DNA from: Blepharisma stoltei ATCC 30299
Taxonomy: Eukaryota; Protista; Ciliophora
Reading direction: 5' to 3'
NCBI GenBank assembly: GCA_965603825.1
Contig: CBFDEM010000062.1
Span: 186,001-250,000 of the forward strand
DNA: 64,000 nt
The notes under the pieces were generated by a model. The model saw nothing but the letters and a program-made list of their open reading frames with translations. It was not told the DNA's origin and made no database searches. The first letter of the stretch is position 1; each line of letters begins with the position of its first letter. A program made the translations under genes and the position numbers. This document shows, piece by piece, positions 2,522 to 58,476 of this stretch.

Positions 2522-4411
2522 TTAACATAAAACACTTTGTAACCAACTGTGGTGCAATGCTTCAGCATCCATCCTTTGTGCTGGATTTTTAGCTATCAGC
2601 TTGCTTATAAACTCTGTAGCTTGAGGTGTCGCATTTAGCAAATTATCAGTGGTCACAATGCTTGCATCCTCTTTTAATATCCATTTCGCAATTTCTTCTT
2701 TATCTTCACTATCAAAAGGAAGCTTCCCTTTCAGCAGTAAATAAGCAATAATCCCTACACTCCACAAATCAGCCTTTTTCCCATATCCTTCTTTATTAAT
2801 CACTTCTGGAGCAATATACGGGAAAGTCCCACAAACCAGCTCCAATCTCTCCCCATCTTCACATCTTGTAGCTATTCCAAAGTCAGCTAATTTTATTTCT
2901 AAATTCTCTTCATCAGCTACAAGAATATTTTCTGGCTTTAAATCTCTATGAACAATGTTCAACCCATGCAAATGGCTTACAATTTCTAGTAATTGCTTGA
3001 TTACTTTTTTAGCTTCATTGTCGGTGAATTTTCTCTTTTTATTTATAAGGTCAAGAAGTTGGCCTCCTTCTATTAATTCTGTGATAATCCATGAATATCT
3101 TTTAGAGTCAAAAGTCTCTTTATATTTTATGATTTTTGGGTGAGAGGAAAGCTTTAAAATTTCGATCTCACTAGCTAAAAAGCTTTCGTCGAGCTGACTA
3201 AGCTTTTTTTTGTCTACTTTTTTGGCAGCATATTCAAGTCCTGTGGATTTTTCGATGACTTTAAAAACTTCTGAAAATCTGCCGCCTCCAATTTTGTTTT
3301 GAATTGTATAGAAATTATGGATTTTTCGAGTACTTGCTGCGATTTCTAATTCTTCAGCCCATTTGTCGCGTTGGCGGCTGGAACTGCACCAAAGATCTAT
3401 TTCTTTGTAGGACTTTTTGCTGTTTGAAATGGAGATCCCATATTTATATTTTTCAGAGCTATTTAGCATGCTCTCTATATAGCAGTCTTCAAGAAAAACA
3501 ATTGATTTTGGAAGAGTTTCTTTTTCATTGTTGAAAAAATATAATAAACTGCCTTTTAAGACATTATAGCAAGGAGAAAATGATGAGGAATGCGATTTTT
3601 GGTCTTTTTGAAAAAAAAGACCATGAAGTTTTGAGGTGTTTTCTCGGTCGGAAACAATCTTTGATTCTGATACGATGCGATTATAAGGGTTTTTTGTGAT
3701 TCCAAGCGAGTTTAGAATACTATTGATTTTCCCAAAGATGACATCATCAATAGTATGGTGATTTTTGCAAAAATTTTTGAACTGCTCAAAGTTCATAAGC
3801 CCTTCACTCCCATAATGCGTAACTGCTTTTGCAGCCAAAATATTAGCTCTATCAACTAGCGAATCCTCAAATGTAGCGTTATCGCTTAATTCCTTTGCTG
3901 TGTCTAAGTCTTCAACCTCTTTAGTCCCTATAGCAGAACTATCAGCTATCCCATCAGAACTCTGCAAAAAATGCGAAAAAATTGGAACTAGATCATTTTC
4001 AATTAGAAAATCATCATGGTTTGAATCCAAAATTTTGAATATTTGCCGAGTCCTTAAGCCTTCCCCTATTTTAAAGGATTCAGAAATTCCTTTTAAGAAT
4101 CCTTCAAAATCAATTTTTTCTTTTCTGTTACCACTGAATGTCTCAAAAAGTCTCTCCCCGATCATGTCCTGTCTAGTTGTTACGTTTGGAGAAAAATATT
4201 TCAAAAAGGTCGACTTGTCAATTTTGCACCTCTCTTCAGATCGTAAAGAGAGATCAAAAAACAAACAGGCTAAGAGGTGCATTTCTTGAGAGGTAACTAC
4301 TTAGAACTTACATGCAGATAAGATTTTCTTGTCCTCACAAGCTAATTCTCTCTCGTTAAGAACGAATTTTTTGGCTGTCTTTCTGGTTGCTGCTGATGTG
4401 CAAGATCCCAT
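2522..4411 (-). CDS. CAMK-group Ser/Thr kinase with N-terminal EF-hands and PH domain (CDPK7-like architecture), ~624 aa; intron 4297-4311
   Basis: MGSC N-terminus; EF-hand-like FKILDSNHDDFLIENDL; PH domain ending CSSSRQRDKWAEEL; kinase motifs IGGGRFSEV, AAKK, HRDLKPEN, DFG, APE, DLWSVG. Confidence 0.88.
4297..4311 (-). other. 15-nt intron GTAAGTTCTAAGTAG
   Basis: GT..AG, in-frame TAA; joins the MGSC exon to the kinase ORF. Confidence 0.85.
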
Positions 4412-8781: not shown

Positions 8782-9114
8782 TTCTTTAAACTGAATTGTT
8801 AATTAAAGTTTGTGAAATTAAATATTAATAATTTAGAAACCTTTTAATTCTATTTTATATAATAATATAAGGAAAGGTAATCCTTAAGGCTAGTTTAAAT
8901 TTATAAGCTGGCTAAGGTCTTGGCTACCGTTTATAGCTTATTTTCAATTATTTTGATGTTTTAAATATAGAATGGGGAATTATGATAAGTTTTATAAGCA
9001 TCATCTCTTATTCTTTAAAGCGATCTATTGAGGATAGATCATTTTAGTTCCATTTTGGCAATTTTCTTATACAAAAGAGAATAGTTATTATATGAAAATT
9101 ATTTAATTCAAATC

Positions 9115-10104
9115 ATGGGAAGCTGCGTATGCTGCCAAACAGTCTCAAACCTAGAACTCCAACGATCTGAAACTGTAAAATCCCCAGAGTCCACTGTTCA
9201 AATTCCTCAAATGCACCCCAAAGTCCACGTCCTTGCTGATCGTGTACTTCACAATCAAACTCTTACAGTAACAAACATTGATTTATCAGGAAGGGATTTA
9301 GGGGAAGAAGGCGGTAAGTATTTAGGTGCAATAATCCCTTATTATCATCACATTACATCACTTATTCTATCAAAATGCTACTTGGAAGCTGGCGCATTTG
9401 AAAGTATTGCTTCTGCTCTGACTGATCTTGTTATGCTTAAAGAACTAGACTTTAGCTTTAATAATATAGGCTCTGAAGGAGCTGACATATTGAGCCCAGC
9501 TTTGGAAAGGATGGGAAACCTTGAAATACTAGGATTAGAAGAAGTTGGGCTTGGGAGCAATGGGATGCTGATGATATGCAGTGGAATTGTAGGCCTCAGA
9601 CATTTAAAAGAGCTATATATTGGAAAAAATAATATTGGAGATGTAGGGATAAGAGGACTTGCAAATATTTTCCCATATATATGCAGTCTAGCTACTTTGG
9701 AAATAAATAAAAATGGGATTGGGCCCAAAGGGATGGCATTTTTAGCATCGTCATTAGGATGTTTGAAAAATCTTACAAAATTCAATGTAGGTGAAAATAA
9801 TCTGTTACCGATTGGCGTGTCTATGATGATTCCTCACTTGCCTAGATCATTGGAAAGCTTAGTCATCGACAAAGTAGGGGCTGATAACAGCAATATTATG
9901 AAACTAACTGATATTTTATCTGAATTCTCCAAACTAAAACATTTAAGCCTCGACCACAATGAAATTACATCAGAAGGGGTTGAAGAAATCATAAAAATAC
10001 TTCCAAAGTTAAAGCTCAGCTATTTAGGACTCATTGGATGCGATATCAGTTCTCATAGAAAAGCCCTTAGCCTTGCTGGATCCTCTACCGAAGTGCTACT
10101 GTAG
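9115..10104 (+). CDS. Leucine-rich repeat protein (RNI/RanGAP-like LRRs), putatively N-acylated
   Basis: Repeats LxxLxLxxNxIGxxG; MGSCVCC N-terminus; ends in TAG. Confidence 0.88.
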   Translation: MGSCVCCQTVSNLELQRSETVKSPESTVQIPQMHPKVHVLADRVLHNQTLTVTNIDLSGRDLGEEGGKYLGAIIPYYHHITSLILSKCYLEAGAFESIASALTDLVMLKELDFSFNNIGSEGADILSPALERMGNLEILGLEEVGLGSNGMLMICSGIVGLRHLKELYIGKNNIGDVGIRGLANIFPYICSLATLEINKNGIGPKGMAFLASSLGCLKNLTKFNVGENNLLPIGVSMMIPHLPRSLESLVIDKVGADNSNIMKLTDILSEFSKLKHLSLDHNEITSEGVEEIIKILPKLKLSYLGLIGCDISSHRKALSLAGSSTEVLL

Positions 10105-10201: not shown

Positions 10202-11038
10202 TTATCTATCAGCAGGACAACTATTTTTTTCTTTTTTCGGGCTCATAGACTTATTACTACAAATTCTTGACTCCAAGCTTCTCATGCTTCTTTGCCTTGT
10301 ATCGTTTTTCTTCACAAATATTTGGATTTCGTCTAGTAGTTTCTTCCTCATATCTTTTTTATTATTCAGTCATTCTGTCGCTGTTTTATCTAAACCTTGA
10401 ATTGTACATTTACAATTTGTATGTCTGCAGTTATTGCACTTCGCTTTATTTTCTTCTTGTACAAGTAATACAGAAAGATTAGGAAACTGCATTCCATTAA
10501 TTTTTACAGGTGTTTTTTTCCTTATCTTTACTGCAGTTCTTGGTGAGGAATATTGACGATGATGTCTATGATGATTTTTTTCATTTTTGCTGAAATAGTC
10601 AATTACTCGAAGCTTCGCTTCGAGTTCAGGGTTTAATGGTGTCAACGGATAAGATGAAGCTTGAATATCTAGGCTTGAGCTGTTATGGGAGCTGCATTTC
10701 TCTTCTAGAAGATCTGCAAAGTCGTAATCGTTATCTACGCTAGAGTTTTTATATCTTCTTGGCTTATGTTTTGATACTTTTGCATAAGCTTGAAATAAGG
10801 TTTGTGAAGGATTTGTTGGAGAAACCTTTCTAGGCTGTTTATAAGCTATTTTATTTGCGTTATTCTTTTCGTCCATTGACTTGTTTAGCTTTTGGATTTC
10901 TTCGTGGATTTTTTCTGTAATATGATTGGTTTTCTTGAATACTGTTTGTCTATAATTTAAGCTGTGGGAAATCCCAGAATTTAAAATTTCATCACTTATT
11001 TGTTGGCTTTGAGAAGCGTATTTTTGAGCATATTCCAT
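10202..11038 (-). CDS. Hypothetical basic protein (~278 aa)
   Basis: ATG 11038 (MEYAQKY) avoids overlap with the divergent gene; reads through TGA 10370 to TAA 10202; small Cys cluster CNNCRHTNCKC. Confidence 0.65.
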
Positions 11039-11088
11039 GCTAAAGATATATTTTCCTAATATGACACTAATGAAAACTTTATAATAAA

Positions 11089-14000
11089 ATGAGAATTCTC
11101 TATGCATATGAAGTAGGAGGAGTAGAGCAAACATATAACCAGCACGCACTAGATATCACCGCGCCTGACCTAGAAAGCGGTCTTTCTCGCGAAATCCTTC
11201 TTAAATATCTCAAAGATGACGGAGCTCAAGTAAATGATGAAAGTGTTTTAAGTATTTATAACGAATCCCGCAGCGCCTACGTCACCCTCAGAAAAGGCGA
11301 TTTCGTTTCTTCAGACTTAGAAGTCCGGGTTCTGATCCGCAAAGGCCATTCCCCTTCAGTTCACGAACTTCTTCAAAAAATTGAAGCTCTTGAAAAACAG
11401 GTCCATATGCTTCAGAAAAAATTAGAAACCAGGGTAGAAACGACAGCAGCCAGAACTTATGCTATAAGAGGGTCTATTATATTAACAGCTTACTCAGAAA
11501 TCGACGTAGCCATGCTTCACAGCTCTCCTCTGGTTACTTCAAATAATGGGGTCATCAAATCTATAGAAGATTCCAGCCTAGACTTCGAAGGCGAAAGAAG
11601 AAATTTAATTGAATATTTAGAATCAAGAGACGCTGGCTGCGATATTAGGTTTGAGGTCGCAAATACAGAAAACTTGTATGAACTTTTGGACTATAAGCCT
11701 AAAATTATTTATATTTCTTCACAAGGATATTTGGTGAAAAGAGAAAATGGGTCAGAATTTGTACTGGGGTTTGAAAAAAGAGGTGGGGTTGAAGATATGG
11801 GGATTTTAGATGAAGTCGATGCAGATAGACTGAAGAAAATATTGGGCTCTGCGTCGACCTATTTTCAAATAGTAATTTTTAAAGGGTGCTATTCACAAGA
11901 AATAGGGGCAATGCTGCAGAATGCAGGGTTTAACTGTGTGGTGACTGTGCATGATCTGGATGGAGACATCCATGCGAAAACTTTTGTAGCTGAAATGTGC
12001 AGGAGTCTTATTAAAGGAGATTTCATTGAAAATGCTTTCAAAAAAGCAGTGGTGACTATAGAAGATAAAAATAAAATTTCAAGCTGCTGTTGTGCACATA
12101 GACATAAACCAAATTGCTTGTGGATGAATAAGATCCAGTGCTCAAATAAAATGGAAATCCACCGAGAGCATGTCCCAGAGTCTTGTAGATGCAAATTTGG
12201 CAGCAATATTCATAGTATCAACTGTGCTTGGGCTCAAAATTTCATGACTGACTATACACCTGAGAGGCAGCTTACAGACGATGAGCTTTTGAGTCAGAAA
12301 TTTGTAATTTGCTGCTGCTCTCCTGAAATTAATCATGCAAATATCAAATTTAGCATGCTTTATAACGACTCTAGTATCCTAGAACAAGTTTTGTTAGAAA
12401 ACAACGGGAAAACTAGCATTGAAATAAAATCCCCGCTTCCTGCCCATTTAAAGCCTCCATATGTAGAAAAAATCACAGTTGGAAGAAGAAAACAAATAAG
12501 GCAGCTGGCAGTGCTTGCTTCAGTAAATCGATGTGTAGAAGTTATCGGGCAATGCGGGATTGGGAAGACCATGCTTGTGAAGCGTGCTGCACAATATGTG
12601 TATGAGAGAAGGATTTTTAAAGAAGGCGTTGTGTATTTGGATTTCATGATGAGAACTGATATCATCTTTATGTACCGCTATATAGCAAGCACGCTGAATT
12701 TGCCATCAATAAATAACCTTAATGAGCTTTGCAAAGCACTTGACAACCTTGATGTGCTACTTATTATTGATAATATTGACCCTCTTCTAAAGCAAGAAAA
12801 TTCAACTTTAAAAGAAACCTATTCGTCACTGATAAACAATACGACTGCGCCGAAGTTTATAATAGCGACCCAAAAAGAGCTGAATTTTTCGCATTCAGAG
12901 AAATTCATAGTCAAGCCTTTAAAAACTAGGGAAGCTGCCAAACTGCTGGTGAATTTGGTAGATCCTAATTGAAAGCTGAAATCGGATTATATTAAGCACC
13001 CAGAGTCAATTGAAAGTGATTTTTTTGATAAAATTGGAACTCTGCCTGCAGCTATTCAACAAATAGCGCCTCTTTTTAAAGACTATTCGTTAGAAGAACT
13101 CAGTTTGCAAGCTTCAGGAAGTTTAGATAACTTTAATCAGCATTCAGCTAAGGATTCAGAAAAAACGCTTTCAATGTCTCTTACTCATGTTAATAATAAA
13201 TTGAACAAAACTTCTGATTTTTTGAAACTTTTATGCTATTTGCCATCTGGAGCTTTCAAGATTAATATCGATTATTTATGCAGAGGCACAATACTTGACT
13301 ATATGAAAATTTTACAGCTATTAAACACTGAAGGCCATACCTTAAATACATGGTTTTTACATAGTGACCCTAATTTTGAATTTGTACTTGTCAGAAGTAA
13401 TGTTGCGAATTATTTGGAAACACACTATTCTAATCGTCCAGAATTCGCTACAAAGGTAATTGAGCACTTAGCTGTTTTCGCTAGGGCTCTTTTAAAGTGC
13501 TTTTTACTTGGGTCTTCTCCAATAGGCGCCGAAGTAAAAGGAAGCTTATTTTTTGTGAATGCTGCAATAGACTATAAAATGTGAAGCAGCCAATTTCCTG
13601 ACCTAAGCGACCAGCTAGCTGAGCAGCTTGAAAAAGAACCAATTAAACCTCGAGACATGTTTGCAAAAATTGAAGCAAATTTCTGGTATTATATGAACAT
13701 TGATCAATTAAAGCGGGCTTTAGGCATAAATGATACTATCCCTGAAGAAACTGCTAAGGCCCTAGGAGAAATCATGAACTGTACAGCAGCAATTTTCATT
13801 ATTCTAGGAAAAAATGCAGACGCTCTAGAACTGCTTGATAGAGCTAAAAAATGTTGTGAAGCTTTTAATCTGGATAAATACCATAGCATGATCAATTTAA
13901 CCTATGCTTCTTTATTATCCGCAAATCCAAATAATTTTGATAAAGCGATTGACTTAATTGAAGCTGCGAAAAATTATTTTATTGAAGCAGACGATAGAGA

Positions 14001-16140
14001 AGGCCAAGCTGAATCCAACTTTTTACAAGCAATGATAAAGGAATTTAGAAGCACCAGCAGTGAAGGCACATTAATTCTTTCAAGAAGGTCAACACAGACT
14101 GACTTAGAAGGCCAATTAGAGCTAGCTGATACAAGATTTAGAGAGTCAGAAAATAATTTAGGCTGTGCTAGAGCTCAGCTAGCCTTGGCAGAGTACAAGC
14201 TTAAATATGAAAGCAACGAAGCTGACGTGCTTGATAAACTAGAAAATGCCAGAGTTGTGTTTGAAGAACTTGGCAGGACTTATTGGGAAGCTCGAGCTAC
14301 CATTTGTCTAGGCGACTGGTATTGCTTTGGGAAAAACTGGATTAAAGCGAGAGATATCTATACTTCAGCTTTAAACTTAACAAAGAGAAATGGGGACAGG
14401 AAGCAAGAAATCGAAGTCACAGAAAAAATAAAAAAATCAAATGAAATGATCAGAAAAAAGAGCAAAAATGTAATAGCTTTGTTAAAGTCCTCACCACTGG
14501 TTGAAAAAACCAATAGCATACAAAGGGTAGGCGCAGTTTGCCGATTTCCATCTGAATTTAGAACAAATCTTAAAGCAGAACTCGCTGAAACTGGAAAAGA
14601 AGTCTGTGTAAGATTTGATATTGGTTCTAAAGCAAAACTTAAAGAATACTTGCAAGAAAATTGCAGAATCTTGCATATTGCAAGCGAAGTCCCAAGAAAT
14701 AATTGCTTGATTTTTGAAAAAGAAAATGGCGTTGCAGAAATTCTGACTAAAGAAGACTTGAAAAATGAAATTGTAGGATTTCAGCAGTATGGAGTTGAAG
14801 TTCTAGTCTTAGCAATGCCATTTAGTGTTCAGCTTGGAGAATTCTGCCGCCAAGAGCTAGGAGTTCCCCATGTCATTGCATTTGGCATGCCAGATTACCC
14901 TAAGGATGGAGAACCTATTCACCTATATTTGGCATTTGAATCGGCAATTCATACTTTTTGTATCAGTTTTTACAAAAATCTTGTGTCTGGGCTGACAGTA
15001 AGGACTTCATATCTTGAAGCCAAAGAAGAAATGGAGCTATATCTAGACGAGCAGTCAAGAGAATTTGGCTACTTAGAGTTTATGGGTAAATATTTTGAGC
15101 AGTGGTGGGAAGAATACCACAGAAATGAGCCAGTTCTCATAAATGAAATAAGTGGGATTCATGATTCCCCAATATTTTTTGAAGATGGCCCAGAATATCC
15201 TAAAAACTCTTCACTTATTGATATGAGCACTCCTAGAGCTCCAAGCAACATTGAGAAAAAAACAAAATGCTTTATAGGCCGACAAGTAGAACTTTACAAC
15301 ATAATTGAGGCCTTAAACGACTCTTCTTCATGTGTCCACATAACTTCTGCTGAAGGCGTCGGAAAGTCTGAATTTGTGAAATATTTAGGATATTATTTGA
15401 ATATCAGAGACAAATACCCAGATGGGATTTATTTATTGGATCTACAAGGAAAATCATCATTAAATGAAGTTTATGAGCTGTTCCAAAAAGTAGGGCTTGC
15501 GTTTTATTCGTCTGATATTGATCCAAGAACATTTTTATACCAGCAAAGGCTTTTATTGATTCTTGATAATTGTGATGCGTTAATGACGCAGGCAGAAATT
15601 ACTTTTAACAGCTTGCTGAGAATATTTTTAAAAGAATGCAAAATATCGGTAATATTAACATCATGCGCTCAAATAACCACAGATGATTCGTATAATATCA
15701 AAAGATTTGCGTTGCGCCATTTAAATAACCAAGAATCATATCAGCTTTTAGCTTTGAAAAGTCCGAAATTCACAAGCCAAAGGTTAGAAGCAGAAAGAGA
15801 TAGGCCGGAATTTAACCAAACAGTATATGAAATAATTCGAGAATGCCAAGGAATTCCTAGAAAAATATTAATTTGGGCGAGAAGACTGGAAAAGCAGGAT
15901 TCAAAAAATATTTCACTGCTGCTTTCTTTGAAGAATATGAATAATACAGCTTCTGAGCCTACAAGTCCATTGTTTGAAGAAGATTTGCCATCATTAGAGT
16001 TAGTTAGAAGTAGCACAAAAGATGAATTCTTAACAAGATCGAGAACAGTTGAGCCATCATCGATAGCATATCAAAGCCAAGAAGGCGATTGGTTCATTAA
16101 GACAGATCTCAAGAGAAATTCTTTATTCCCTTACAAATAG
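11089..16140 (+). CDS. NLR-like STAND NTPase protein, 1683 aa: CHAT-like domain + Cys/His insert + NB-ARC-like NTPase + TPRs + second CHAT-like domain + second NTPase
   Basis: Three ORF-track pieces share one frame, joined by TGA 12970 and TGA 13582 with no TAA/TAG between; Walker A GQCGIGKT and SAEGVGKS, Walker B LLIIDNID and LLILDNCD, GxP-like GTLPAAI and QGIPRKI; TPR-like helices ~13760-14450. Confidence 0.85.
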
Positions 16141-16901
16141 AAGTAATTTAGAATTTGATAATATCTCATAAATATTGATTTAATTAATTTCATCCTTATT
16201 TTGACAGCTCATAAAGCTTTGGCTGAAATGTAATAATTTTTTGATAAATAATCGCAATTCATAAAGAAAATGTTAATGATGGGAAATTAAATAAAATCAA
16301 TATTCATGATAAATCCATAATTTGTGCTTTTAATCTTCGTAATTATTTTTCGATAATGTCAAAAAGGAAATGATGGGCAAAGAGTATAAATTGCATTTTC
16401 AAGATATTTGCATAGGCTGATAGATGTCACAAATTTTGACGAGATCATAAGAAAAAATTATAAGTTTAAAAAAGTTTTAAATTTTGACATGGACCTGAAG
16501 TCATGCCCTAACTTAACTAAACCTCTCTCTATCCCTTATTATTAAAATATATGTGTTAGATAGTTTATAAATTACTATTATTTTGAGCTAAATTGGGCGG
16601 TAATCTTATCAATTTTATAAAATGGCATTAATGCTACCAAAAACAATTATGGATTAAATCCTATCTTTAATCGAAAATTTTTTGTATTGAATTTATTCAC
16701 TCCAATTGAAAGGGACATTGGATGATATTTATTTAAAACTTTTCAGAAGATATCTTACAATTGATTGGCATTATTCACATTTTTAAATTAAATATATATG
16801 TTATACTGGTTAACTTTTAGCTTATAATTTTAAAATAAATCTATGCATTTTTAATTAAAAGAAATTTAAAATACAAAAAATTTCTTGAAAAAATTCAAAT
16901 T

Positions 16902-17702
16902 TTAATTAAAAGAGGCATATCCTAGTCCACTCCTTGGGCTTGCAGCTTCTTCGACTTGTGAAGTTGGGACTGAAAGGCTATTTTGTGCCAGATCTTTGAC
17001 ATCAATCTTGCAAGGCTCTTCAAATGGTATCAGCTCCTGCCTCTTTTTATTCAAGAGAGACTTTATTCGGTTCTTTACTGAACATTCTGTCCGATTTCCC
17101 ACCTGTTTTGCTATGGTGCTCCACTTGTTGCCAAGCTCCTTATGCAGCTCAAGCAACTGTGAATCTTCCTTGTCAGTTCAGCTCCCTCTCTTGATTTCAG
17201 GATTTAAATGGTTGTTCCATCTTTCCTTGCAATGCTTGCCAGTCCTTATTTTGAGTCCTTTGTGTATTGTATTGTTGATAATATTAGCAATGTTTCCCCA
17301 CTTTTTTACAGCGCTTTCTACCAATTCGATGAGCTTTTCATCTTCTTTTTCAGACCAAATCCCAGGGCGCAAAGTTCCAGAGACTTGGATTTCGTTGATT
17401 TTCGCCATACACTGCTCAGCTGACTGTTCGGTTTCCTTTGAAATCGTTTCAAAGTCGTGGATGTCGAGATCCTCGATATTTTTGTCCTTCTGCTGAGCAT
17501 AGGCTTTGGTTATTTCATAGAGCCTTTCAACTTGGTTCTTTTTCCAAGTCCTCTTGTATTTCCCTTTTGGAGCTGTTTCAACAGAGTTTTTAATTGGAAT
17601 GGACACTACTGGGACCTGGGGAAAGGCACAGAAGTAGTATGGGGTTATGGTCTGAATTGTATAGTTTGGAATAAAGTATTGAAAGCTTTGCTGATTTTCC
17701 AT
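16902..17702 (-). CDS. Myb-like DNA-binding protein (266 aa; R2R3 plus a degenerate first repeat)
   Basis: GIWSEKEDEKL...WGNIA...RTGKHCKERWNNHLNPEIKRGS(W=TGA 17178)TDKEDSQL...GNKWSTIAKQVGNRTECSVKNR. Confidence 0.93.
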
Positions 17703-20620: not shown

Positions 20621-23600
20621 TTATTTTTTCCTAAACATTTCCAGCATTCTATAGGTCACCACAAATCCACCGACCACATTTATACTGGCGAAGAAGAGGC
20701 TGGTGAACCCAAGAGCGCTTCCTTCATCAAACTTGACATCTTCAGATGCAGGAGTCAGCTCAAGCATGGCTCCAATTACAATAATTCCTGATATAGCGTT
20801 CGTAACACTCATAAGAGGAGTATGCAATGCTGGGGTGACGTTCCAAATAACCATATATCCAATGACAATTGCCAAAATGAATATCAAAAAGAAGCCTAAA
20901 AATTCTACATCAGCTGAGTAGCCAATTGACAAAAATACAGTAGCCAGCAATGCAATATTCAAAAGCCAGCTGTATTCTTGGATAAAGGATTTATGGGAAG
21001 CGTCTTCAAGAGGCTGAGCTGCATGGAAAACTGGAGCTGCCTGAGGTGCGGCTGCTGGTTTTGCTTGAGGAGGTGGAGGTGGTGGTCTTTTGTCTAAAGG
21101 AATCCATGTGACTTCTCCAGCATTCGCAACAACCATATTGTTTACAATTTCGTCCTTCATGTTAATATGGAACTTGCTAGCTCCTCCTAGTTCATCAAGC
21201 AAATGCCATAAATTATTAGCAAATAGTTCTGAGCTTTGTGGAGCCATTCTTGATACTAAATCAGTGTATCCGATAATAACTACTCCGCTTTGTGGATCTG
21301 TAATAGCATTTCCAGGCTCAGTCAGTTCGCAGTTTCCGCCCATTTCGGCAGCCATATCAACAATAACGCTGCCTGGTCTCATCACTCTGACCACTTCTTC
21401 TTTAATCAGTTTTGGAGCTGGCTTTCCAGGAATTAAAGCAGTGGTAATTACTATATCGCTGACTCTGGCAATATCTTTAGTTAGCTGATCCTGGGCTCTT
21501 TTAAATTCGTCACTCATTTCTTTGGCGTAACCTCCTACACCTTGTCCTTCTTCTTTAAGCTGAACTTCTACGAATTCTGCACCTAAACTTTCGGCTTGTT
21601 CTCTTGCAGCAGATCTGGTGTCGAAAGCTTTTACAATGCAGCCAAAGTTTCTGCAGTAGCCAATAGCAGCAAGACCTGCAACTCCACATCCAATGATAAA
21701 AACTTTTGCAGGCGGCAATTTTCCAGCAGCTGTTATTTGAGCCTTAGGGCATTTTTGGAAAATATTGAACGCCTCTACGACAGCTCTGTAACCTGCAACA
21801 TTGGCCATAGAGCTTAAAGAGTCTAATTTCTGAGCACGTGTAATTCTAGGTACACAATCCATAGCTGCTATGGTGAGTTTTGGGTATCTTTTAGCTAGGT
21901 TATCTACATATGAAAGATCTTGTGCTGGGTATACATAGCAGACAAGCAATTTTACGTTTTCAAGCAAGTCTTGCTCATTTTGGTTGAGTTCTGCATTAAA
22001 AGAAGGTTTTCTTACCTTTAAGATGATATCAGCTTTTCTCCATACTCTGTCAGTCCTGTTAATTTTAGCTCCATACTTTTCGTATTCTGAGTCCCAAAAT
22101 CCGGCAGCTTCTCCTGCTCCTTTTTCGATGATGACTTCAAAACCTGATTTTCTGAACTTTCTGACCATTTTTGGAGTTATAGCGACTCTGCGCTCTCCTT
22201 GAAGCACTTCTTTAGGAACTCCAATAATCATTTGAGGATCTGGATATACACCATCGTCAGCTTCAGACTCAACGACTTCTTCTTTTTTAACCTCTTTTAC
22301 AGCTGGGCCGTTATCTCCAGCTTTTCCTTTTAATTCTCCTAAAATATCTTTGATAGATTTATCAGCACTTCCAAAGAACATTCTGGTATTTGGCTTCACA
22401 AATAGTGGATTCTCTATGCCAGCGTATCCTGTTCCTGATCCTCTTTTGAAGACACAGACCATTTTGCTTTTCCATACCTCGCATACAGGCATCCCAGCAA
22501 TTGGGGAATTCGGGTTTTCTTGAGCGTCTGGGTTGACGATATCATTAGCTCCAATAATCATAGAAATATCGGTATGTGGAAAATCTTTATTGATTTCTGA
22601 CATCTCCATAACGATGTTATAAGGAACGTTTGCTTCTGCTAAAAGCACATTCATATGTCCAGGAAGTCTTCCTGCGACAGGGTGGATACAAAAGTGAACT
22701 TCCTTGCCCATTTTTCTTAAAACGTCAGCAAGTTCCCCGACGTCATGCTGAGCTCTAGCAACTGCCATTCCATAGCCAGGGACAATTACAACACTTTTTG
22801 CTTTGACCAGTTCTGCAACAAAATCTTGGCACTTTATAGGTGTTTGAACACCATCTCCAATGTTAACTGGACCCATCGTTGTTCCTTGTCCAAAGCCTCC
22901 CATAATCACACTGAAGAATGACCTATTCATGGCTCTGCACATAATATAGCTAAGAATGGCACCAGAAGAGCCGACCAAAGCTCCTGTGATAATTAACAAG
23001 TTGTTTTGAAGCAAAAATCCAGAGGCGGAAGTAGTCCAACCTGAATAAGAGTTCAGCATTGATACAACAACTGGCATATCTGCACCTCCAATAGCCATAA
23101 CAAGATGCCAGCCTACAAAGAACGAAATTCCTGTCATTGCCATCAAAGATTGAAAAGCCAATGTTTCGTCTTCAGCGAAAAGGAATAAATATCCAAGCCC
23201 GAAAATAAGAATCAGGGACACGATATTTAGCATATGTCTACCTCTCCCACATATCAGTAATGGGATTCCGCTGATCAGTCCTTGGAGTTTTGCAAAAGCG
23301 ACTACTGAGCCAGTAAAAGTAATAGCTCCCATAAAAACGCCGACAAAAGTCTCGGATTTCTCGATTATCCCCATGGCTTCGTTTAACTCATTCTCATGGA
23401 GGTATTTAGAATACCCGACAAGGGTTGCGGCAATACCAACAAAGCTGTGCAAAGCTGCGACCATCTGAGGCATCATAATCATTTCAACTTTTAAGGCAAG
23501 GGTAAGCCCAATCAAGCCTCCTAAGGAAAATGCTGGAATAAAGTAAACGAAATTGCTATTGAATTCGTCTAATAAAAATGTTGAGCCGATTGCAAGAGTC

Positions 23601-23719
23601 ATTGAAATGATTCCGAAGAAATTCCCTTTTCTAGAAGATTCATGCTGTGATAATCCACCCAGCGCGAGGATAAAAAGTAGACTACATAGCATATAAACAG
23701 ACTCCACTATCTGTTGCAT
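20621..23719 (-). CDS. NNT: NAD(P)+ transhydrogenase, single polypeptide in beta-alpha order
   Basis: PntB motifs ([49 protein letters not shown]) followed by PntA motifs ([41 protein letters not shown]). Confidence 0.97.
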
Positions 23720-24002
23720 TTTATTATTGGCTATAATAGAGAATTAACTATCCAGAGATAAAAGCATTATTTTAATTGAGATAAAATAATTAAGAGAGTT
23801 CAAAGAGAGTTTAATAAAATAAAATTGTTTGAAAATAATCATAATTTGTAGCCATCATATTTAAATAATGGATTCAATAATTATCCTATTTTCCTATCAT
23901 TTAGAATCTTAGTATGTAAATCCAAAATGTTTTAGGTAAAAATAAATCGATTTTTTTAAAGGTAAATTTATATCTAAATATACATATTATTATATTTATA
24001 GC

Positions 24003-27000
24003 TTATATTGGAGCGATATCTCCTTTTGAAACAAATTTTACAGGCGATCCTTCTGATCCAGTAAAGCTCTGCCTCACTGGGGATTGTGGCATCTTAACTT
24101 TTATCAAATTATTATAACTCTCTTTGCTTTGCACCTTTATAGTGTTTTTTATATTTTCCTTAATTTGATTATACAAATCATAGCTAAGTGGCTTATTGGG
24201 AGTATTATATTTGTTTTGCATTTCCATATATACATTTATCCATTCTCCAAGCAGCTGGTTCAGCTTAACCACTTCTCCTTGTTTTCTTTCCAGCTCTTTT
24301 TCAAAGTTTTCTTTCATCTCGGTTAAATATGATTTTCATTTTTCTCTTTCTTCCCTCATTGAGCTAAAAACATCTTGTTCAAGCTTTGCTAGCATTGCTT
24401 GGTTGTGTTCGGCTACTAATTTGTATTGCTCATTGCTGTTTTTAAGCTGAAAATTATGCATTTCTTGCATTTGAAATCTTGTTTCAAGGTTCTTATAACG
24501 AATGAAAAAGCTTTGGCTTTCGTAGCTTTCGTGGCTTTCGTTTTCGTTATACGCAGAAGCTAAAGAAGTAAAATCGAGCCTTTTTTGTGTGAAATCATGC
24601 TTTACTGTGCATGATCTGGAATTGGATCTTTGTCTATGCCCTTGTGGCTGAGCTTGCACTGGGACTGCAGGTTTGTTTGTAAAAGTCTTGAGAAACTTTG
24701 ACTTTGGGCTTGTAGCTTCTAAAGCAGTAGGTGGTTTTAGCACTATTTCTGGCTCTTTGTTTTCATATAGTTTTACCACCTTTTTATAAGAATTTTGAAG
24801 AAATTCAATCATTGACTCTAGTGTTTTGATTTGTTCATGCTGCTTTTTACACATAAATCTTTTTATCATATATTTATGATTGGCTAAATTCATCTTCCAG
24901 TCCAAGCTATACAGAGTTCTTGACATATTTGCATTAATTATAGCTGAATGAATAACTTGATTTCTCAGTTGAAAAATCGTGATATCCTTGTTGAGCTCAG
25001 AATTATTTTCAAGAACCTGCTTTAAGCCTTTCGCATAAGGGCTTGCCTGATATAGTCCATTTGGATCAATAGGAATGCTGATTTTTGAAATCCCTAGGTC
25101 ATAAGTTTCACTTTTATCGCCTTCTACTTCATCATGTTCTGTAATAACAGGTACATCAAGCCTAGAAACCATTTCAGATCTATCGTCAAACTCCAAACAA
25201 GTCGTTTCTTTTGGATTTGAAACATTATCAACAAATTCTTTAAATCTTTTATCAAGATCCTGCAAAGAAGAAATAAGCCTTTTAGTTTGCACTGAAAGTC
25301 CTTCGTTTTCTCTTTTTAATACTGCGTTTTCTGTAGAATCTTTATTTATCATCATCAAGGTTTTGTGGTAATTTTCATAATACTCGTTAGCTCTTTGTTC
25401 AGATTGCAGCTGCTTTGTTCGAGAAGACGCTAATTTATTTTCGAGTTCTTGGTTTTTTTCAGCAAGAATTTTGTATTCGTTTTTGAAATGATGGTATTTT
25501 TTTTTGAATTTTTCCAAATCTCTTTCAAGGGTTTCTCGGACTTGTTGGAAATTTTCTTTCTGCTCACCATCGAAATCTGTTAAACGCTCTGGGATAAAAT
25601 TGAAGGAAGAGGCTAAGGAGTCAGTCTCGAAAATTGAATAGTGAGTGTTTTTCTTGTCTAAAATTGGAAAATTGTCTTCAGAAACTGCCCTTAAGTCTTC
25701 TAAATTTACTAAAAGCTTGGCTTCTTCTGAAGATTTTCTGCTGATTTTTGGCTTTGAGATAATTGTGAGAGATTTTCTGGTTCCTTGAGGAGATTGGACT
25801 CTACTGCTTTTCTGCGACTTGCAGTCAGTGCATGAAGTTTCTTTTTCTCCTCGTAAAAACTGGATTTCTATTTTTGCTGAATTTAGTTCATTTTTGAGCT
25901 GTTCAATTAATTTCAAGTAATTGTCAGGTGAGTTCTTTATATTCACTTTGACCTTGTTTTTTATTGCTTTAGCTCTTATTGCGAATCCCATTGTGTTCAA
26001 AGTTTCTTCTTGGTTTTTTGGCGATGGAGAGCAAGCAACAATAAGTGTCGTTTTATAGTTTCCTCCTAACGACTCTTGTAATAGTCTTGTTAATTTTGAG
26101 TCCCTATATGGAATATGGTCAGAATTCTGCACCAGAGCGTGAATCACGTTACCTAGTGCTGAAAGTGACAAATTTATTTTTTTGGCTTCTTCTAGCTTAT
26201 TTCCAGTCACCCCTGAGTTATTGACTTTTTCGCTACCCGCCAAATCGACCAAATTCAAAGTTCCTTTTTTTTCTGAGTCATTTGGCAATTTCTGCATAAC
26301 CTGAAGAATAAAAATCAAATGAGATCTGGAAGACGTCTTATTTAATTTTGTAGACGCAACTGTCCTCATTTCCTCTCCTAGCGTTAAGGCTTCTAGCATA
26401 TCATTTTCTGAGGTTACACAAACCTCAGTAAGCCCCTGCACATAAATTCCTCTTCTCGGACACTGTTTTATTCTCAGTGATTTTGTCTCCGCATCTAATA
26501 AATCTCTTATAGTTTCTTTATAAATTTCAAGCATTGAGCATTTCAAAGTATATTCAATTTCGCCACTATCCATTTGGACAGCTTCAAAAATTTGTGAGGC
26601 TGCTCTCGGAATAATCCCTCTAGACTCTTCAGAATATATATCATATCCCATCATTGTATAGGTTTTGCCTGATCCTGTTTGCCCATAAGCGAAAATTGTG
26701 CCATTATAGCCTGTCATGACATCTTCAATAGTTGGTTTCCCAGCTAATTCATAGACTTCTTGTTGGGTTGAGTTTGGATCGAAGATCCGGTCTAATGTAA
26801 ATGATTCGAGGTCTTTTCCTTGACCAATGCCTACCGTTTTTTCGTTTATAAAAGTGATTACTTCTAGGGAATCGGAATATGCCTATATAATCGTTACCAT
26901 TTCGTAATCAACGATTGGTCGAAATCTCCCTATAACTTTTATATTGCTTGCTCTTGGTTGTTGGATTACAGATATGCTAGTATCAGAGCCCTGACTCATT

Positions 27001-31224: not shown

Positions 31225-32847
31225 TTATTCTAAATTATTAAGCACTTTTACAGCGCTATAATAATATTCTTCGCCCTTTTTATTCCTCTGCAAAACTCCT
31301 CTGCTTTCCCAGAATGAAATTTCTTTTCTTAGCTTATGAGGGTGAATTCCAAGCTGTTTACTTAAATCTTCAGAAGATTTTTCTCTGTCATCTTCATCAA
31401 ATAAAGAAATTATGGCTGCATGCAAAGGAGTTACCCCTTCAAATTTTTTGCTTCCATTTGCGAAGTCAAGCGTTAAAGTTACACTGCCAAGCTGTTCGTG
31501 GAATTTTAATTTTCTTGAAGCTTTCATATATGTATATAATTCTGAATACTCCTCAAAAACTTTTCCTATTTTTTCTGGGAGTTCAAATTTCATATCCTGC
31601 TCTTCTAAAGGCCAGAAATAGCTTGAAATAATAAGAAAATCTAGGCTTTTTATAGGCAAAAATCCTTTTCCTTTTCCTTTTTCATGCACAAAAGCATTGA
31701 TTCTTTTCGAGCTTAAAATATCTTGGATCATGACTTCACATTTGTGGACGTTCCCTTCTCCAAACCTCTTTTTAAGCATTTCCAGGTCTTTGATTTCATT
31801 CCCTACTTCAAATTGTGTATTATTCCATAATTTTTTGCAAAGATAAGTCCTGTATTCTTCCATAAAAAGTTCTGGAGAACCATAAATGTTGATAAGCATA
31901 CTTACAATGTCGCTTTTCTTATTAAGAGCACTAATAACGTTTCTTAGCGCACTTCTTGGAATTGGCTGCCAATCAAGGGCTGATTTTTCGTCTTCATCAC
32001 TTGAAAAATCGTCTTGCTCTTTTATGCTCTTTTGCTTTATGTCTAGGAGTGCATAGAGTTCTTCATCCTCAGATATGGTTTTTATAATGCATTTAAAAGT
32101 ATCTGTTCTGCTTCTTAATTCTTGTTTTAGTGGGCCTGAAATAGATTCCAGCAAGTTTATGGTTGGGAAGAGTAAAGGCATGATTTTTGTCAAGTTAATG
32201 TAAACCAGAAGAATTCCATCAGTCGATTTGCTGCAATGTACAGCTCGTTGTATTAGCTGCTCCTTTGTTTTATTTTCAAGAATTTTACTTAAGTCACAGT
32301 ACTTTAAAGCTTCAGCTAAGTCATCTATTGCTGGTTTTGTTTCGGGGAAATCTAAAATAAGATCGAAAATCTGTTCAATTCTTATCAAGCCAATTGAATA
32401 ATAAAATTCGTGGATCGTAAAAGATTCCCAATATTGGAGATTTTCCATAGAGTCAAAATGACTTCTAACCCAAGGCAAAAAATAGCAATTTAGTCAGTCT
32501 AAAGAAGGGTATAAGCAGCTTTCATTTATTTTGGCAATGCTTTTGACTTTTGTGTAGACTGTTTTTTTGATGCATTCTAAAAAGCATTCGTCAGCTATTA
32601 GGTTTCAACCATGGATTCTAAGTTTTTCTAAAACCGCTGTACGGATTAAAAGTGTGCTCTCATGCTCCAGTGCCAAATTGGTCATTGATTTTAATGATGC
32701 TTCATTTTCAATATTTCCTATACTTTTCAGCTGAGAAAGCCCTGACTGCAATACTCAATTGTTTATTTCTTGAAGATTCAATATATTTTTGCCTACTAAA
32801 TCGACTTCAAAAAGAGAGCTTGCTTGCTGGATTCAGTTTGAGTCCAT
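31225..32847 (-). CDS. ANAPC2: Anaphase-promoting complex subunit 2 (cullin-like), 540 aa
   Basis: DWQPIP, DIVSMLINIYGSPELFMEEYRTYL, LKKRFGE...CEVMIQDI, ISSYFWP; N-terminal extension open through 4 TGA. Confidence 0.9.
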
Positions 32848-33327
32848 GTTATTTTAAATTTTGCGGGTAATTTGCATTATTGTTTTAATTTACACAAGAC
32901 GAGTGCTTTAGATAAGAAATGAACAATAGGCAATAAATAATAAAGGAAACAGGGAGCAGCATTTTGTAAATTTTTGATATAGATATTATACTGTATTAAG
33001 TGTCTTGAATAAGACATTATGCTTATTTCTTAATTATAAAATATAACATTTATTCGAATATATATAATGTAATTAGCAATAGCATTCATTAAGCTTTTTA
33101 AAAGCAAGTCAATCAAATGTATAGTCTTAATTGTAGTAACTGGACTACTATGTGGCACCTAAAGCTAAGCACAAATTTAAGAATCAGTTTCATCTATAAA
33201 AAAGAGCTTGATAAATAACATTATAAATTAATTTTTATGAATAAATCACTCTTTCAATGATTCAATACTTCATTCTTTTTGACTAAGCTAAATGAATATT
33301 CTTTAAATGATTTTATATGATAAAAAT

Positions 33328-35050: not shown

Positions 35051-38000
35051 TTATCTTCTCAAATTTCTCTCTAAATCTGCAATTCTTTCTTCATATGCCT
35101 TTCTTTGATGCACAATTTCCTGTTTCATCCTCTTTATATAATCCTCATATTTTTTAGCACAATCCCCAGAGCTTTTTTCCAGTTCGACTCTTTCTTCTAC
35201 AAGCTTATTAAACAAATCAATGACTTCTCCAGGGTCTAGCTCTTTATTATCTATCATTCTCTCAATTTGTTCTAAAGTGCTTCCAATTGATTTTGAGCCA
35301 GGCGTTACAAACTCACTGAGCTCATCTGCATCAAGATTCAAAATATCCATGCAGTCGCTATAATATTCTCTATCAATTTGTCCTGACATGCCAAGTTTTG
35401 ACTTAAGCCCTTCTACAGAAGCTGATAATTCTCTAAAAATTCGTCTGGTAATATTAAATAAAGCTTGAAGCTGAGATTCAGCTTTTTTAAGCTGCTGCTG
35501 GAGTTTTTCATTTTTCTTGATTTCTTTTTCAAGAGATGTAAAAGCATCTGTGGAAGCATTTTGTCGGTCAGCTTGAATTGCTTCTAAATCCATTTCGGTA
35601 GTTTCAAGCTTGACTTTTATAGCTTTCAGCTGCGTGTCTTTTCGATCACAGTCGTTTTTAAGTTTTCTTACTTGGTCTTTTAATTTTTCAGTCTGGTCTG
35701 AAAGAATCTTTCCATTTTCGATATCTGACGAATAGGAATCTAGCCTGGATTTCAGATCTTTTATCATTGCATCTTTTCTAGCCAAATCATTTTTGAAGCT
35801 CCTCAGTTTTTCAGCCATTACAATGTTATCATCATTTAGCCTTTTTTCGCTTTCTCTGGACTGTTCTAATGCATTTTTCATCTCATAGATCGCCTTATCT
35901 TTTCTGCCGAGCTCATTTTTCATTCTTTTGAGTTTTTCAGAAATATCTTTAATTTGTTCAATTTCGTCTTGCATAGCATTTGTTTCGTTTTCTTGCTGGT
36001 CCTTAATAGATTTATAGTTCTCTAATAAGTCTCTTTTTCGATTAAGTTCGTCAGAAACCCTCTTTAAAGCGAGCTCAAGTTCTTTATTTGTGTTCACTAA
36101 TTGGTTCCAGTCTTCTGGGGAGTGCCATCTTTCTCTGATTCTATTTACTTCTTCAGCAAGTCTTTGCATTTCAAACCTGTGTCTTCTTTCTAATTCCTGC
36201 AGCTCTTTTCGGTTTGTTTGGTCTTTATCACGATTTTGTTCATGCATTTCTATGTTCATATCAAGCTCGACTCTGAGTTTTTGTGCTTCTTCTTTGACTC
36301 CTGCTAATTGTGATTCGAGGTTTCTTATAATGGCTTTTAGCTTATAAATTTGGCTTTCTAAAAGTACAACTTCATTTTGCTGCTCTTCTGGGACAGACTT
36401 AGGCTGCTTTTTATCTTTTTTAGGCTTAATAGATTTTAGCTCAGTTTTTAGTGATCTTATGACTGCGTCTTTTTTGGAAATCTGCATCATATAGTCAATA
36501 GTTTCAGAAGCTTTTTTGGCACCTTTTCTGTTTTTAAGTTCTAATGAAATTTGTTCCTTGAGGCTTGAAATTTGTCCTTCGTATTTTTCTACAGTTTTAT
36601 CGAACTCTGCATATGCATTTTTAATTTCTCCTCGGATTTCGTCAACTTTTTCGAGGTATTGCTTTTCGATTTCTTCTTTTTCTATTTCAAGCTCTCTTAT
36701 TCGGTTTTCATAGTCTTTTATTTTGGTTTTTTGTTGAGCTTTGGTTTTTTCAGCTTCTTCAAGCTTAGGGGTTGCGTTTTCCCAATAATGCTCAAGCTCT
36801 TTAATTTGTGAGTACAGCTCTTCTTTTTGCTTTTCTGCAGTATTTAGTTTTTCCTTAAGATCACCATTAAGAGATTTAAATTCATTTACCTTTGTAGCTG
36901 ATTCTTGGATTTTTTGGTTTAATTTGAAAATTTCGCCCTTAAATTCTTGTTCCATTGATCTGCGGTCTTGGTCAATTTTCTTTATATATTCTGCCATTCC
37001 TTCAGCAGTGCTTGCTTTTTCATCAAATCTCTGTAAAAGCTTATCTCTGTCATCTTTGACTAATTTAAGCTCATCTTGAGTTCTTGCTAAGGCCATTTCT
37101 AATTTTCTTACTTCTTCTTTTCACTCTTCTTCAAGCTGCCCAATCCTTTTATCAGAGTCTGCTTGGCCTTCATAAAATTCTCTGAACTTGTTTTCTGACT
37201 CAATTCTCTTTCTGATTTCATCATCTAAAACAGTTAGTTTTTCTCTTAATGTAGAGTGGAGGGCAAGCATTTGGGTATTTAAATTTTGAATTTGAGACTC
37301 ATAAGCTTGCTTTAAATTCATTATTTGGATGGTATAAGTGTGCTCCATTAGCTCTTTTTCTTCTTCTTTGATGGCTTTTTCTGCTTTTTCTTTTGGAGGC
37401 CTGCCTACACTTTTGCTTCTTTTTTCTTTCTTTTTGGCTTCTTCTTGGGATTTGTAGTAGTTTACGTATTCTTCAAGCTGGGTGATTTTGTTTTCTTGGG
37501 CTTCTTTTTCGCGCTTGTTTCTTTCCATTTCGAACTTTAAGTCGTCTTTAAGTGCGTTTATTTTGATTTTAAGCATTTTAAGCTCTTCTGGCTCACCTTT
37601 GGCTTCTCTTAACTCGTCTATATCGTTTCGTAGTTCTCTATTTTTTTTCTTTAAAACTGTATTTTCAGAAGCATGCTTATTTTTTTCATCTTGTAGCATC
37701 TTTACTTGCTTTTGTAGCTCTGCAACAAGTTTATCTTTAGAAATTAAGGTTTCTTGATGCTCAGTTTGCCATTGTCTCATATCATTTTGGACTTTTTCAA
37801 CCTTTTTGCCAGTAGTTTCTCTCAGCTCTCCCATATTTTCAATCTCCTTTCCTAATTTTTCATTATTTTGAGCTACCTTATCATATTCAATTTCAAGCTT
37901 GTTATATTGTTTCTTAGTTTCATTCAAAGCAGTATCTAGCTTCCTATTTTCTTCTAGCACTTCTTCAAACTTCTCAGCAATATCTTTGCTTTCAGCTTTT

Positions 38001-41000: not shown

Positions 41001-42784
41001 GAAATTTCACTTTTAGCTGTTTTTTCTAGCGCTTCAAAGTGTGATTTAAGCTCATCTCTTGAATCTTTCATCTTATCAAGCTTTACTCCAAGCTGATCAA
41101 GTGACTTTTTCACTTCTCCAAGCTGCTCTTCAGAAATTTCATTCTTTTTCTCCAGCTGCATAATTTCTCTTTGCAGCCTGCTGATTTCTTCAACATGCTG
41201 ACTTTCTTTTTGGCTGAATTTTTCTTTGAGAGCATGGTTGTCTTTTAAGACTTCATAATGTTTCATCTGATATAGTGTGACTTCTTTATTAAGGTCTGCA
41301 ATGCTTTTTTCATATCTTCTGCTTTCGAACTCTTCCCATTCAAATTCCAATCCTTCTTTTTTCACGTCAGTTTGGGTGTCTTGGCTATGTTTGACTACTT
41401 TTGCTTTTTTGGAAGCTTTAAGTATTGAGTCTTTTTCGGTATTCCAAGCTTGCCTTTCTTCTTCAAATTGCTGCTTTAATTTGTTAATTGCTTCTTCAGC
41501 TCTTACCAGCTGCTGTAATGCTTGCTCTTCTCTGTTCTTTAATGCAGTAATTCTTGCATTTAGTCTGGAAACTAGCTGAGTTTGGGCAGCAAGATTTTGT
41601 GTGTAGGACTCAGTGCCGTCAATTTTGGTTAAAATGCCAGAGAGGTCTTGGTGGAGTTCTTTATTAGACTGTTCAAGAGAGGAAACTATATGCTTGAGGT
41701 CTGCGTTTTCTCTTTCAAGCTGCTGAGATTTCATCTGTTCAGTTCTTAAAGAATTAGAAAGCTGGGATAGCTCTTCGTCTGGGCTAGCTCTGGTCAAGCT
41801 TTCTTGAGATCTTGATTTTTGGATTTCAATTAATTGGTTTTGCAGCTCGATAAGTTCTTTATTTTTATTGGCAATTGAGTTCTCTAGGTCACGATAATGG
41901 TCTCTGCTTATCTTCAATTCTTCATAGAGTCTTGTATTTTCACTTTCCAAGTCTTGAATTTTTTTGACGCTTACTTCGCCATCTGGGCTTCCTTCTAAAT
42001 CTTCTTGTTTAAAAGTAACTGATGATCTCTGGCTTTCAGCTAGCTGCCTTGATAAATTTTTATTTTCTTCTTCAAGCTGCAAGACCTTGCTGAGCACATC
42101 ATGGTAACTTGACTGTGAGAATTTTCCAAGCAAAGCTTCGATATGTTCAGCCTGTGTTGACACTTTAGTCCTCAATTCAGTGATCACCTGTTCTTTTTCA
42201 CGGATCACTTTTTCATTATCCTCTCTAATTGAAGACTGCCTTTCACTCAGTTCCAGCACATACTGCTCCCTCTGTTTCAGCTTGTGAGCTTCTTCTTCTA
42301 CCTTCCTCAACTTATTTGTGAGGTCATTTATTTTTTGGATATTAGTTTCAGCTTCTTTTTTATCATTTTCAAGGTCTTTCTGCAGCTGAGCAATGGTGTC
42401 GCTCATTTCAAGCACTTCGCTGCCTTTAAGCGTTCTATGGAATTTCTCATTTAGCATATCAAGCTCATTTTTAAGGCTTTGGGACAGCTGCTCTTTGTCA
42501 AAATTGTTCGTTTTCAGCTCTTCTATTGTCTGGTATGCTGATTCCAAAGATTTTTCGGTATTTAATAGAAGGACTCGTGCGTCGTCTAATTGGTGCTCAA
42601 GCTCAGCTATTTCATGTCTTTGGTCACCAATGATTCTTTGAAGGTCTTGGATTGTGTTGTCTTTGATTGTTAAAATTTCTAAAGTCCTGCGTGCGTTGGC
42701 TTCATATTTTTCTCTTTCTTCTTGTAAGGCGAGGTCAATTAAAGTCTCCAGGGTTGGCGGCTTTTCTTTGAATAAGTTGGCCAT
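35051..42784 (-). CDS. Giant coiled-coil protein (2577 aa), possibly basal body/centrosomal
   Basis: The 1887-aa and 681-aa ORFs share a frame, joined by a single TGA (37121) and a coding-like linker (EEE-W-KEEVRKLEM); heptad E/K/L/Q throughout. Confidence 0.8.
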
Positions 42785-42934
42785 GTTTTTAAATATAAAT
42801 CTGAAATTAGAATAAAGGATTTGAGGGATTGATAATTTTGCTTATTTAGAGATGAAATAGTTCTGAAATGGCTTAAATAAAGTTATAAAAATTGAAATAA
42901 ATGATTTTAAGCATAAAAAGTCTAATTTAAGTTA

Positions 42935-49808: not shown

Positions 49809-49835
49809 TTATCTTTTCCAAGTTGAACAATAAAT

Positions 49836-54554: not shown

Positions 54555-54808
54555 TTTGTAATTAATAATTAAAAAAGAGCTTAGGGAATCCAAATTTTTT
54601 TTAGCAGTTTCGCTAATAAATTAAAATATTCCAACTAAAAAATTTATTATTCATCCTGCGGCTTATGTAAAATTCTTATTATAATATTAATGACGTAAAA
54701 CTAAATTAAAGCTTAAAAGACTCTAAACAGAAAATTAAATTTAAATTCATTTTGATTGGATCATAAATAAGATATAATGCTTACAAAAATATAAGATTTA
54801 TACTGATC

Positions 54809-58385: not shown

Positions 58386-58476
58386 TCAGCTGATTAACCA
58401 ATTTTCCAACTAAGTAGTGTATCTAAGTAATTGTATTTCCATATGCATTTGTCTGGTCAGCAACATCTTGTAATTA

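Follow-up and report, generated by a model that had tools for sequence, protein, structure and literature searches.

The gene and its reading frame

The gene analysed here lies on the forward strand of a 64,000-nucleotide stretch of the Blepharisma stoltei ATCC 30299 genome (contig CBFDEM010000062.1, hereafter the window). When the window is translated with code 4, positions 11089-16140 encode a single protein of 1,683 residues followed by TAG, and no intron was seen. The results support the domain order CHAT-like/STAND/TPR-like/CHAT-like/STAND in this one ciliate chain, and both of its CHAT domains are predicted to be catalytically dead. Two in-frame TGA codons are present, at 12970-12972 (Trp628) and 13582-13584 (Trp832), and relatives have a TGG-encoded Trp at the position aligned with the second. 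Among seven aligned family members, the residue opposite a TGA is Trp in 49 of 147 cases, compared with a background of 0.6%, which supports reading TGA as Trp in this open reading frame. UGA has been reported to encode Trp in the macronuclear code of B. stoltei (PMC9942806). The frame is broken under the standard code and under codes 6 and 15; code 10 (TGA as Cys) keeps it open, yet the aligned residues favour Trp.

Contigs from four sequencing runs, probably of RNA, cover the whole reading frame without joints or indels, and a single contig (12919-13679) spans both TGA codons. The 3' contigs end at 15986-16172, that is, shortly before or after the TAG, and positions 16216-16600 are uncovered; such empty flanks agree with the contigs being transcripts. 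The single 1,683-residue reading frame proposed in the first-pass annotation is thus borne out by the code 4 translation and by the contigs bridging both TGA codons. Its expectation that standard annotation would give three fragments fails for three paralogues, P0005 (CAG9327374.1), P0185 and P0186, the translations of which are identical to whole NCBI B. stoltei proteins.

All 27 variants listed for the gene are synonymous. Compared over 1,670 residues, the orthologue L020 has 84% identity, a nonsynonymous difference (pN) of 0.095 and a synonymous difference (pS) of 0.83, which is saturated. The TPR region (pN 0.098) resembles the remainder of the protein, and the C-terminal tail has the highest value among all regions (pN 0.26). 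The gene is therefore real and is maintained under purifying selection. A decaying pseudogene, or three separate genes each ending at a TGA, would explain why the standard code interrupts the frame and why the catalytic residues are gone, and nothing else speaks for it. However, the aligned residues and the cited code give Trp for TGA, the transcript contigs cross both codons, the orthologue is intact although its synonymous sites are saturated, and P0008 and P0009 are full-length relatives without any TGA. We count this explanation as already refuted.

Domain layout

The protein was compared by stop-free pieces, and word searches with these pieces gave 3 and 1 matches. Searches of the PDB with single sequences gave nothing useful, and profiles were required. 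The two modules match each other with a phmmer E-value of 8.5e-13, so the internal repeat is real, and hhalign assigns a probability of 99.8% to the match between the two CHAT profiles. The tandem CHAT-like/STAND plan noticed earlier is confirmed by these comparisons; the motifs quoted for it are present, including the Walker A motifs at 12547 and 15346, and the caspase-hemoglobinase (CHAT) alpha/beta fold, a check that had been proposed, was matched in units 1 and 2. That reading missed two parts of the protein, an N-terminal ubiquitin-like domain and a Cys/His-rich insert.

For the N-terminal domain (residues 1-87, 11089-11349), the best fold matches suggest a ubiquitin-like (beta-grasp) structure, and the top structural matches are DIX domains. 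The DIX resemblance appears to be structural only. The domain has no match in Pfam, in PDB sequences or in the Atlas, a search with PF00778 (DIX) found nothing at the locus, and the hhalign comparison with DIX gave an E-value of 0.61, with 55 of 60 shuffles scoring as well against a DIX profile made of 3 sequences. Unlike the DIX-domain proteins Dishevelled, SOSEKI and SAR 'Musketeer', the 1,683-residue protein has neither a Pfam DIX nor a profile match, and none of the four architectures described for SAR DIX proteins contains CHAT or STAND (PMC12077222). Three true DIX genes, over the Pfam cut-off, do occur in B. stoltei (G000:C30:587258, C11:974454 and C46:693839; L036-L038), and they resemble the SAR 'Musketeer' proteins. 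A long helix, probably a coiled coil, follows at residues 89-125 (11353-11463) in the AlphaFold2 model.

CHAT/caspase-fold domain 1, a predicted pseudo-protease, occupies residues 137-328 (11497-12072), and its last strand (residues 421-425) comes after a Cys/His-rich insert within the fold (residues 331-418, 12079-12342). About 10 Cys and 6 His of the insert are nearly invariant, making it the most conserved part of the family. It has no match in Pfam, and its residue pattern points to a probable multi-zinc domain. In the foraminiferan relative P0026 (Nonionella stella, EukProt), an RRM (residues 571-635, Pfam E-value 4.9e-7) lies within this insert, and P0044 has a longer insertion (residues ~560-725) at the equivalent site. 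The RRM hints at RNA contact by the insert in some members.

STAND nucleotide-binding domain 1 (NBD1; residues 462-625, 12472-12963) has Walker A at 12547 and Walker B at 12757, and matches Pfam AAA_22 (E-value 1.1e-6) and NACHT (1.1e-4). The helical region after it (residues 626-880, 12964-13728) is conserved in the family and includes a GxP helical domain at residue 650, the GxP motif of which is seen directly; by analogy with STAND anatomy, the region would comprise a probable winged-helix domain and helical domain 2. TPR-like helical repeats, likewise conserved in the family, occupy residues 881-1120 (13729-14448), a weak call given that the Pfam TPR_12 match (E-value 1.2e-5) reaches 25.8 bits against a cut-off of 30.1. 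CHAT/caspase-fold domain 2 (residues 1126-1350, 14464-15138) appears dead as well and lacks a Cys/His insert. STAND domain 2 (residues 1385-1607, 15241-15909; Walker A at 15346, Pfam AAA_22 E-value 8.6e-4) consists of the nucleotide-binding and GxP helical domains only, module 2 stopping after the GxP with no repeats behind it. The chain ends in a poorly conserved tail (residues 1611-1683, 15919-16137), the region with the highest pN mentioned above.

Both modules have the GR motif before a P-loop nucleotide-binding domain, the Walker A Lys, the Walker B Asp and the GxP motif. Family members pass the NB-ARC and NACHT cut-offs, paralogues matching NACHT with an E-value of 4e-10 in the NBD1 region and NB-ARC with 1.6e-7 in the STAND 2 region. 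No MHD-like motif is conserved in the family at module 1. The protein thus belongs both to the CHAT fold and to the STAND class, and the order of its module 1 is NLR-like (effector, NOD, repeats), with a dead effector and a weak TPR call.

Loss of the catalytic dyads

An active CHAT protease has a His-Gly and Cys dyad, which is absent from both units of the protein. In unit 1, Gln212 (11722-11724) stands at the catalytic His position, and Lys265 replaces Ser while Cys267 is present, so that Lys-Gly-Cys is found in place of Ser-Ala-Cys. Unit 2 has Glu1200 and Pro1244 at the dyad positions. On these residues, both CHAT domains are pseudo-proteases. The three B. stoltei paralogues, in contrast, have His-Gly and Ser-Ala-Cys in unit 1; of the 46 proteins scored as having both modules, 33 keep the unit 1 dyad, and unit 2 is without either dyad residue in all 36 family members compared.

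The gene falls in a well-supported clade (100/99), none of whose 11 proteins has the dyad. Among ten aligned members, nine have Gln or Glu in the His column and nine have Lys in the Ser column, and the Cys column is free: Cys267 is kept in 3 of the 11, including the present protein and its orthologue L020, and is elsewhere Gly, Arg, Ile, Asp, Asn, Ala or Lys. Mean identity in CHAT 1 is 0.42 in the dead clade compared with 0.44 in the active group; in NBD1, the TPR region and module 2, the dead clade is better conserved than the set of active sequences used for comparison. The conserved Gln and Lys together with the conservation of CHAT 1 form the pattern of a pseudo-enzyme kept for binding, not of decay. 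Dyad loss recurs in other branches (P0063, P0061/P0042, P0066/P0079 and P0065/P0082, in FastTree trees only), as expected if dead partners are useful.

An altered enzyme, in which Cys267 does without the usual His or a metal-dependent activity resides in the Cys/His insert, might account for the retention of Cys267 in the protein and in L020 and for the position of the family's most invariant region inside the CHAT fold. We consider this very improbable, in view of the variable Cys column across the remaining dead clade and of clade member P0029, which has no insert. Such Cys/His clusters mostly have structural roles.

Family and history of the modules

The B. stoltei genome has four family members, this gene and its three paralogues, to which it is ~29% identical; the only other CHAT-type Pfam match in the genome is separase. 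Four more NACHT genes over the Pfam cut-off lie outside the family (G000:C63:108805, C53:502669, C53:1349606 and C27:232815). Relatives were collected by searching 1.84 billion cluster representatives with a profile, and the best 150 matches were examined. Among them, about 40 protist proteins have both modules. The double-module relative of the foraminiferan N. stella is a transcriptome entry and may be contamination. Family loci L023 and L039 lie on contigs with ciliate-type telomere repeats, and L041 lies on a marine contig and adjoins a chlorophyll a/b-binding gene. The Stentor coeruleus family protein SteCoe_35861 (P0018) has a single module.

In the ciliate-like proteins, every branch of the module 1 tree has its counterpart in the module 2 tree, indicating that the duplication is old and that neither module has been homogenised with the other; this also excludes a recent duplication and gene conversion between them. 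The ciliate-like second modules form a clade (100/100), outside which those of P0026, P0044 and P0060 are weakly placed, and it is not established that all second modules go back to one origin. One member of the dead clade, L019:7995-11231, encodes module 1 only, with TGA as Trp. It is syntenic on both sides with its two-module orthologue L026:5001-9887, which has no in-frame TGA, and this synteny indicates secondary loss of module 2.

A short subfamily of 760-800 residues (P0027, P0031, P0032, P0034, P0035, P0038, P0039 and P0041) has an active-type CHAT domain, the Cys/His insert and one NTPase, with no TPRs and no second module. In the ESM Atlas, an oomycete cluster named 'FHA domain-containing' (1,060 residues) scores 0.84 against the CHAT-NTPase module; as a lead, it may be another eukaryotic CHAT-STAND family.

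Genomic neighbourhood

A head-to-head neighbour without a Pfam match (10202-11134, reverse strand) is also kept upstream of the orthologue L020, where it is 43% identical. The transcript contigs of the two genes are only ~50 bases apart (11056-11103), a gap that points to a start of the neighbour near 11039. Other genes in the window encode a PH-kinase (2525-4300), an LRR protein (9085-10101), a Myb protein (17181-17702), a kinesin (24006-26882), an APC2-like cullin (31228-32853), a Rag GTPase (49671-50807), a kinase (53082-54620) and an M24 peptidase (58474-59667). Two long reading frames lie on the reverse strand. That at 20624-23743 encodes a single-chain NAD(P) transhydrogenase of 1,040 residues in beta-then-alpha order, with no in-frame TGA, and that at 35054-42841 has 2,596 codons in code 4 and is mostly coiled-coil-like, with only a weak Fez1 match. 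The neighbours named above from the PH-kinase to the M24 peptidase are ordinary, and no defence cluster was found.

Comparison with known systems

The paralogues P0005, P0185 and P0186 share the domain order of the 1,683-residue protein. Together with SteCoe_35861, they carry the NCBI or UniRef names 'CHAT domain-containing' or 'AAA+ ATPase domain-containing', keep the unit 1 His-Cys dyad and fall in another clade. These paralogues are already annotated as whole proteins, and the layout is a variant of a known architecture. No description of this protist family was found in a literature search that covered few subscription papers. CHAT-NOD-repeat proteins are known in fungi (PMC8851545) and in bacteria (10.1101/2020.01.06.895854). 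Module 1 shares the order CHAT, STAND, TPR with this CHAT-NOD-TPR class of NLR-like proteins (HET-Q2-like), but members of the class have a single module and an active protease, often with a linked gasdermin or effector gene, whereas the B. stoltei protein has two modules, dead proteases, an additional N-terminal domain and insert, and no linked effector. SAVED-CHAT of the Haliangium ochraceum type III-B CRISPR system (PDB 8TL0) differs in three respects: its sensor is SAVED, its His375-Cys422 dyad is active, and it lacks STAND, TPR and a Cys/His insert.

Plant paired sensor/helper NLRs likewise have two STAND units that may act together; there, each partner has its own gene, LRRs are present and the helper bears a live executor domain, whereas module 2 has neither repeats nor a live effector. 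In the APAF-1/caspase-9, CED-4/CED-3 and c-FLIP systems, a STAND platform controls a caspase-fold protease and a dead paralogue serves as a tuner. These systems consist of separate chains joined by death-fold domains, and their proteases belong to another caspase-fold clade; the likeness is one of analogy, not membership. The protein is neither an active CHAT protease nor a plant-type pair, and the labels of immune NLR and DIX protein are not established for it.

Possible functions of the dead paralogue

The catalytic His is missing from both CHAT domains, which makes a regulator or a scaffold likelier than a cell-death enzyme. Our tentative preference is that, in a conserved protist CHAT-STAND family, the gene encodes a nucleotide-gated protein without catalytic activity that acts as a partner of the active paralogues or regulates them. 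The folds, the loss of both dyads, the intact Walker motifs, the purifying selection and the presence of three dyad-keeping paralogues in the same genome are consistent with such a role. The TPR-like arm would keep NBD1 closed until a ligand comes, as in other STAND proteins, and nucleotide exchange would then lead to oligomerisation, aided by the ubiquitin-like domain and the coiled coil. In the active paralogues, clustering might switch on CHAT 1, as filaments do for SAVED-CHAT, the closest solved structure, for which activation by oligomerisation is documented (10.1101/2023.06.23.546230). The dead copy, being unable to cut, would act through binding only: by co-assembly or substrate binding, it could scaffold the family's protease platform or tune it in the manner of c-FLIP, as an inhibitor or an allosteric activator. 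Several points weigh against this. Dead and active members have been seen together in one genome for Blepharisma only, ~29% identity to the paralogues does not assure hetero-assembly, every family member already has an internal dead CHAT in unit 2, and the protease activity of the paralogues is itself deduced from their dyad.

Somewhat less probable is a dead paralogue that works outside the protease pathway as a TPR scaffold gated by ATP, for instance in the cortex, cilia or polarity. Non-immune STAND-TPR proteins and the dead caspase-fold domains of Raptor and of the axonemal central pair offer models for it, and the fold matches include both Raptor (5wbi) and a central-pair chain (7n6g_1N). 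The strong conservation, the four copies, the housekeeping neighbours and the greater conservation of NBD1, TPR and module 2 in the dead clade are in keeping with a scaffold. So is the DIX-like N-terminal fold, given that a role in polarity and motility has been proposed for SAR DIX proteins (PMC12077222). An immune or cell-death NLR seems unlikely. Its TPRs would sense a pathogen or a non-self ligand, and the chain would either pass the signal in trans to an active paralogue or serve as a decoy. Such a receptor would fit the effector-STAND-TPR layout and the nearest outside relatives, which are CHAT-STAND(-TPR) proteins including bacterial Atlas clusters and P0110-like proteins; CHAT is an N-terminal NLR effector domain in multicellular bacteria (10.1101/2020.01.06.895854), and fungal CHAT domains cleave gasdermins (PMC8851545). 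However, the effector of the 1,683-residue protein is dead, and the family shows no expansion. Fungal NLRs bear the opposite signature of expansion, rapid turnover or diversifying repeats (PMC13449251), which this gene lacks: the low copy number, the synonymous variation and the ordinary TPR rate argue against a diversifying pathogen receptor, but do not count against a conserved APAF-1/CED-4-like switch. No Pfam match to gasdermin was found in the B. stoltei genome, although the model may miss distant ones, and PADLOC gave no match for the gene. Its housekeeping neighbours also speak against a receptor that tracks pathogens. With both dyads lost, this gene gives no support to the first-pass proposal of a sensor for immunity or cell death that carries a caspase-like effector. 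A sensor plus helper in one chain fares no better, because active relatives carry protease and TPRs both in module 1, and module 2, a dead protease with a truncated STAND and no repeats, cannot be an executing helper. We place the regulator of active paralogues before the independent scaffold and the scaffold before the immune sensor in trans; the regulator and the immune sensor are compatible.

Significance

To our knowledge, ciliates have no canonical caspases and no described NLRs. As this family and separase are the only CHAT-type Pfam matches in B. stoltei, the family is a candidate for regulated caspase-like proteolysis in ciliates. More speculatively, and in our view doubtful as yet, protists might possess a single-chain 'apoptosome-like' platform consisting of a ubiquitin/DIX-like polymerising head, a zinc-insert CHAT protease, a STAND switch, a TPR arm and a pseudo-protease with a second STAND, to which heterotrichs would have added an all-pseudo-protease paralogue, this gene, co-assembling with the platform and setting its threshold, convergent with c-FLIP. 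The locus adds an all-dead clade and an N-terminal fold to the picture of the family, and in Blepharisma one dead gene can be compared with three natural counterparts that keep the dyad. If the dead copy does tune the active ones, the STAND-caspase-pseudocaspase logic would have arisen independently in protists.

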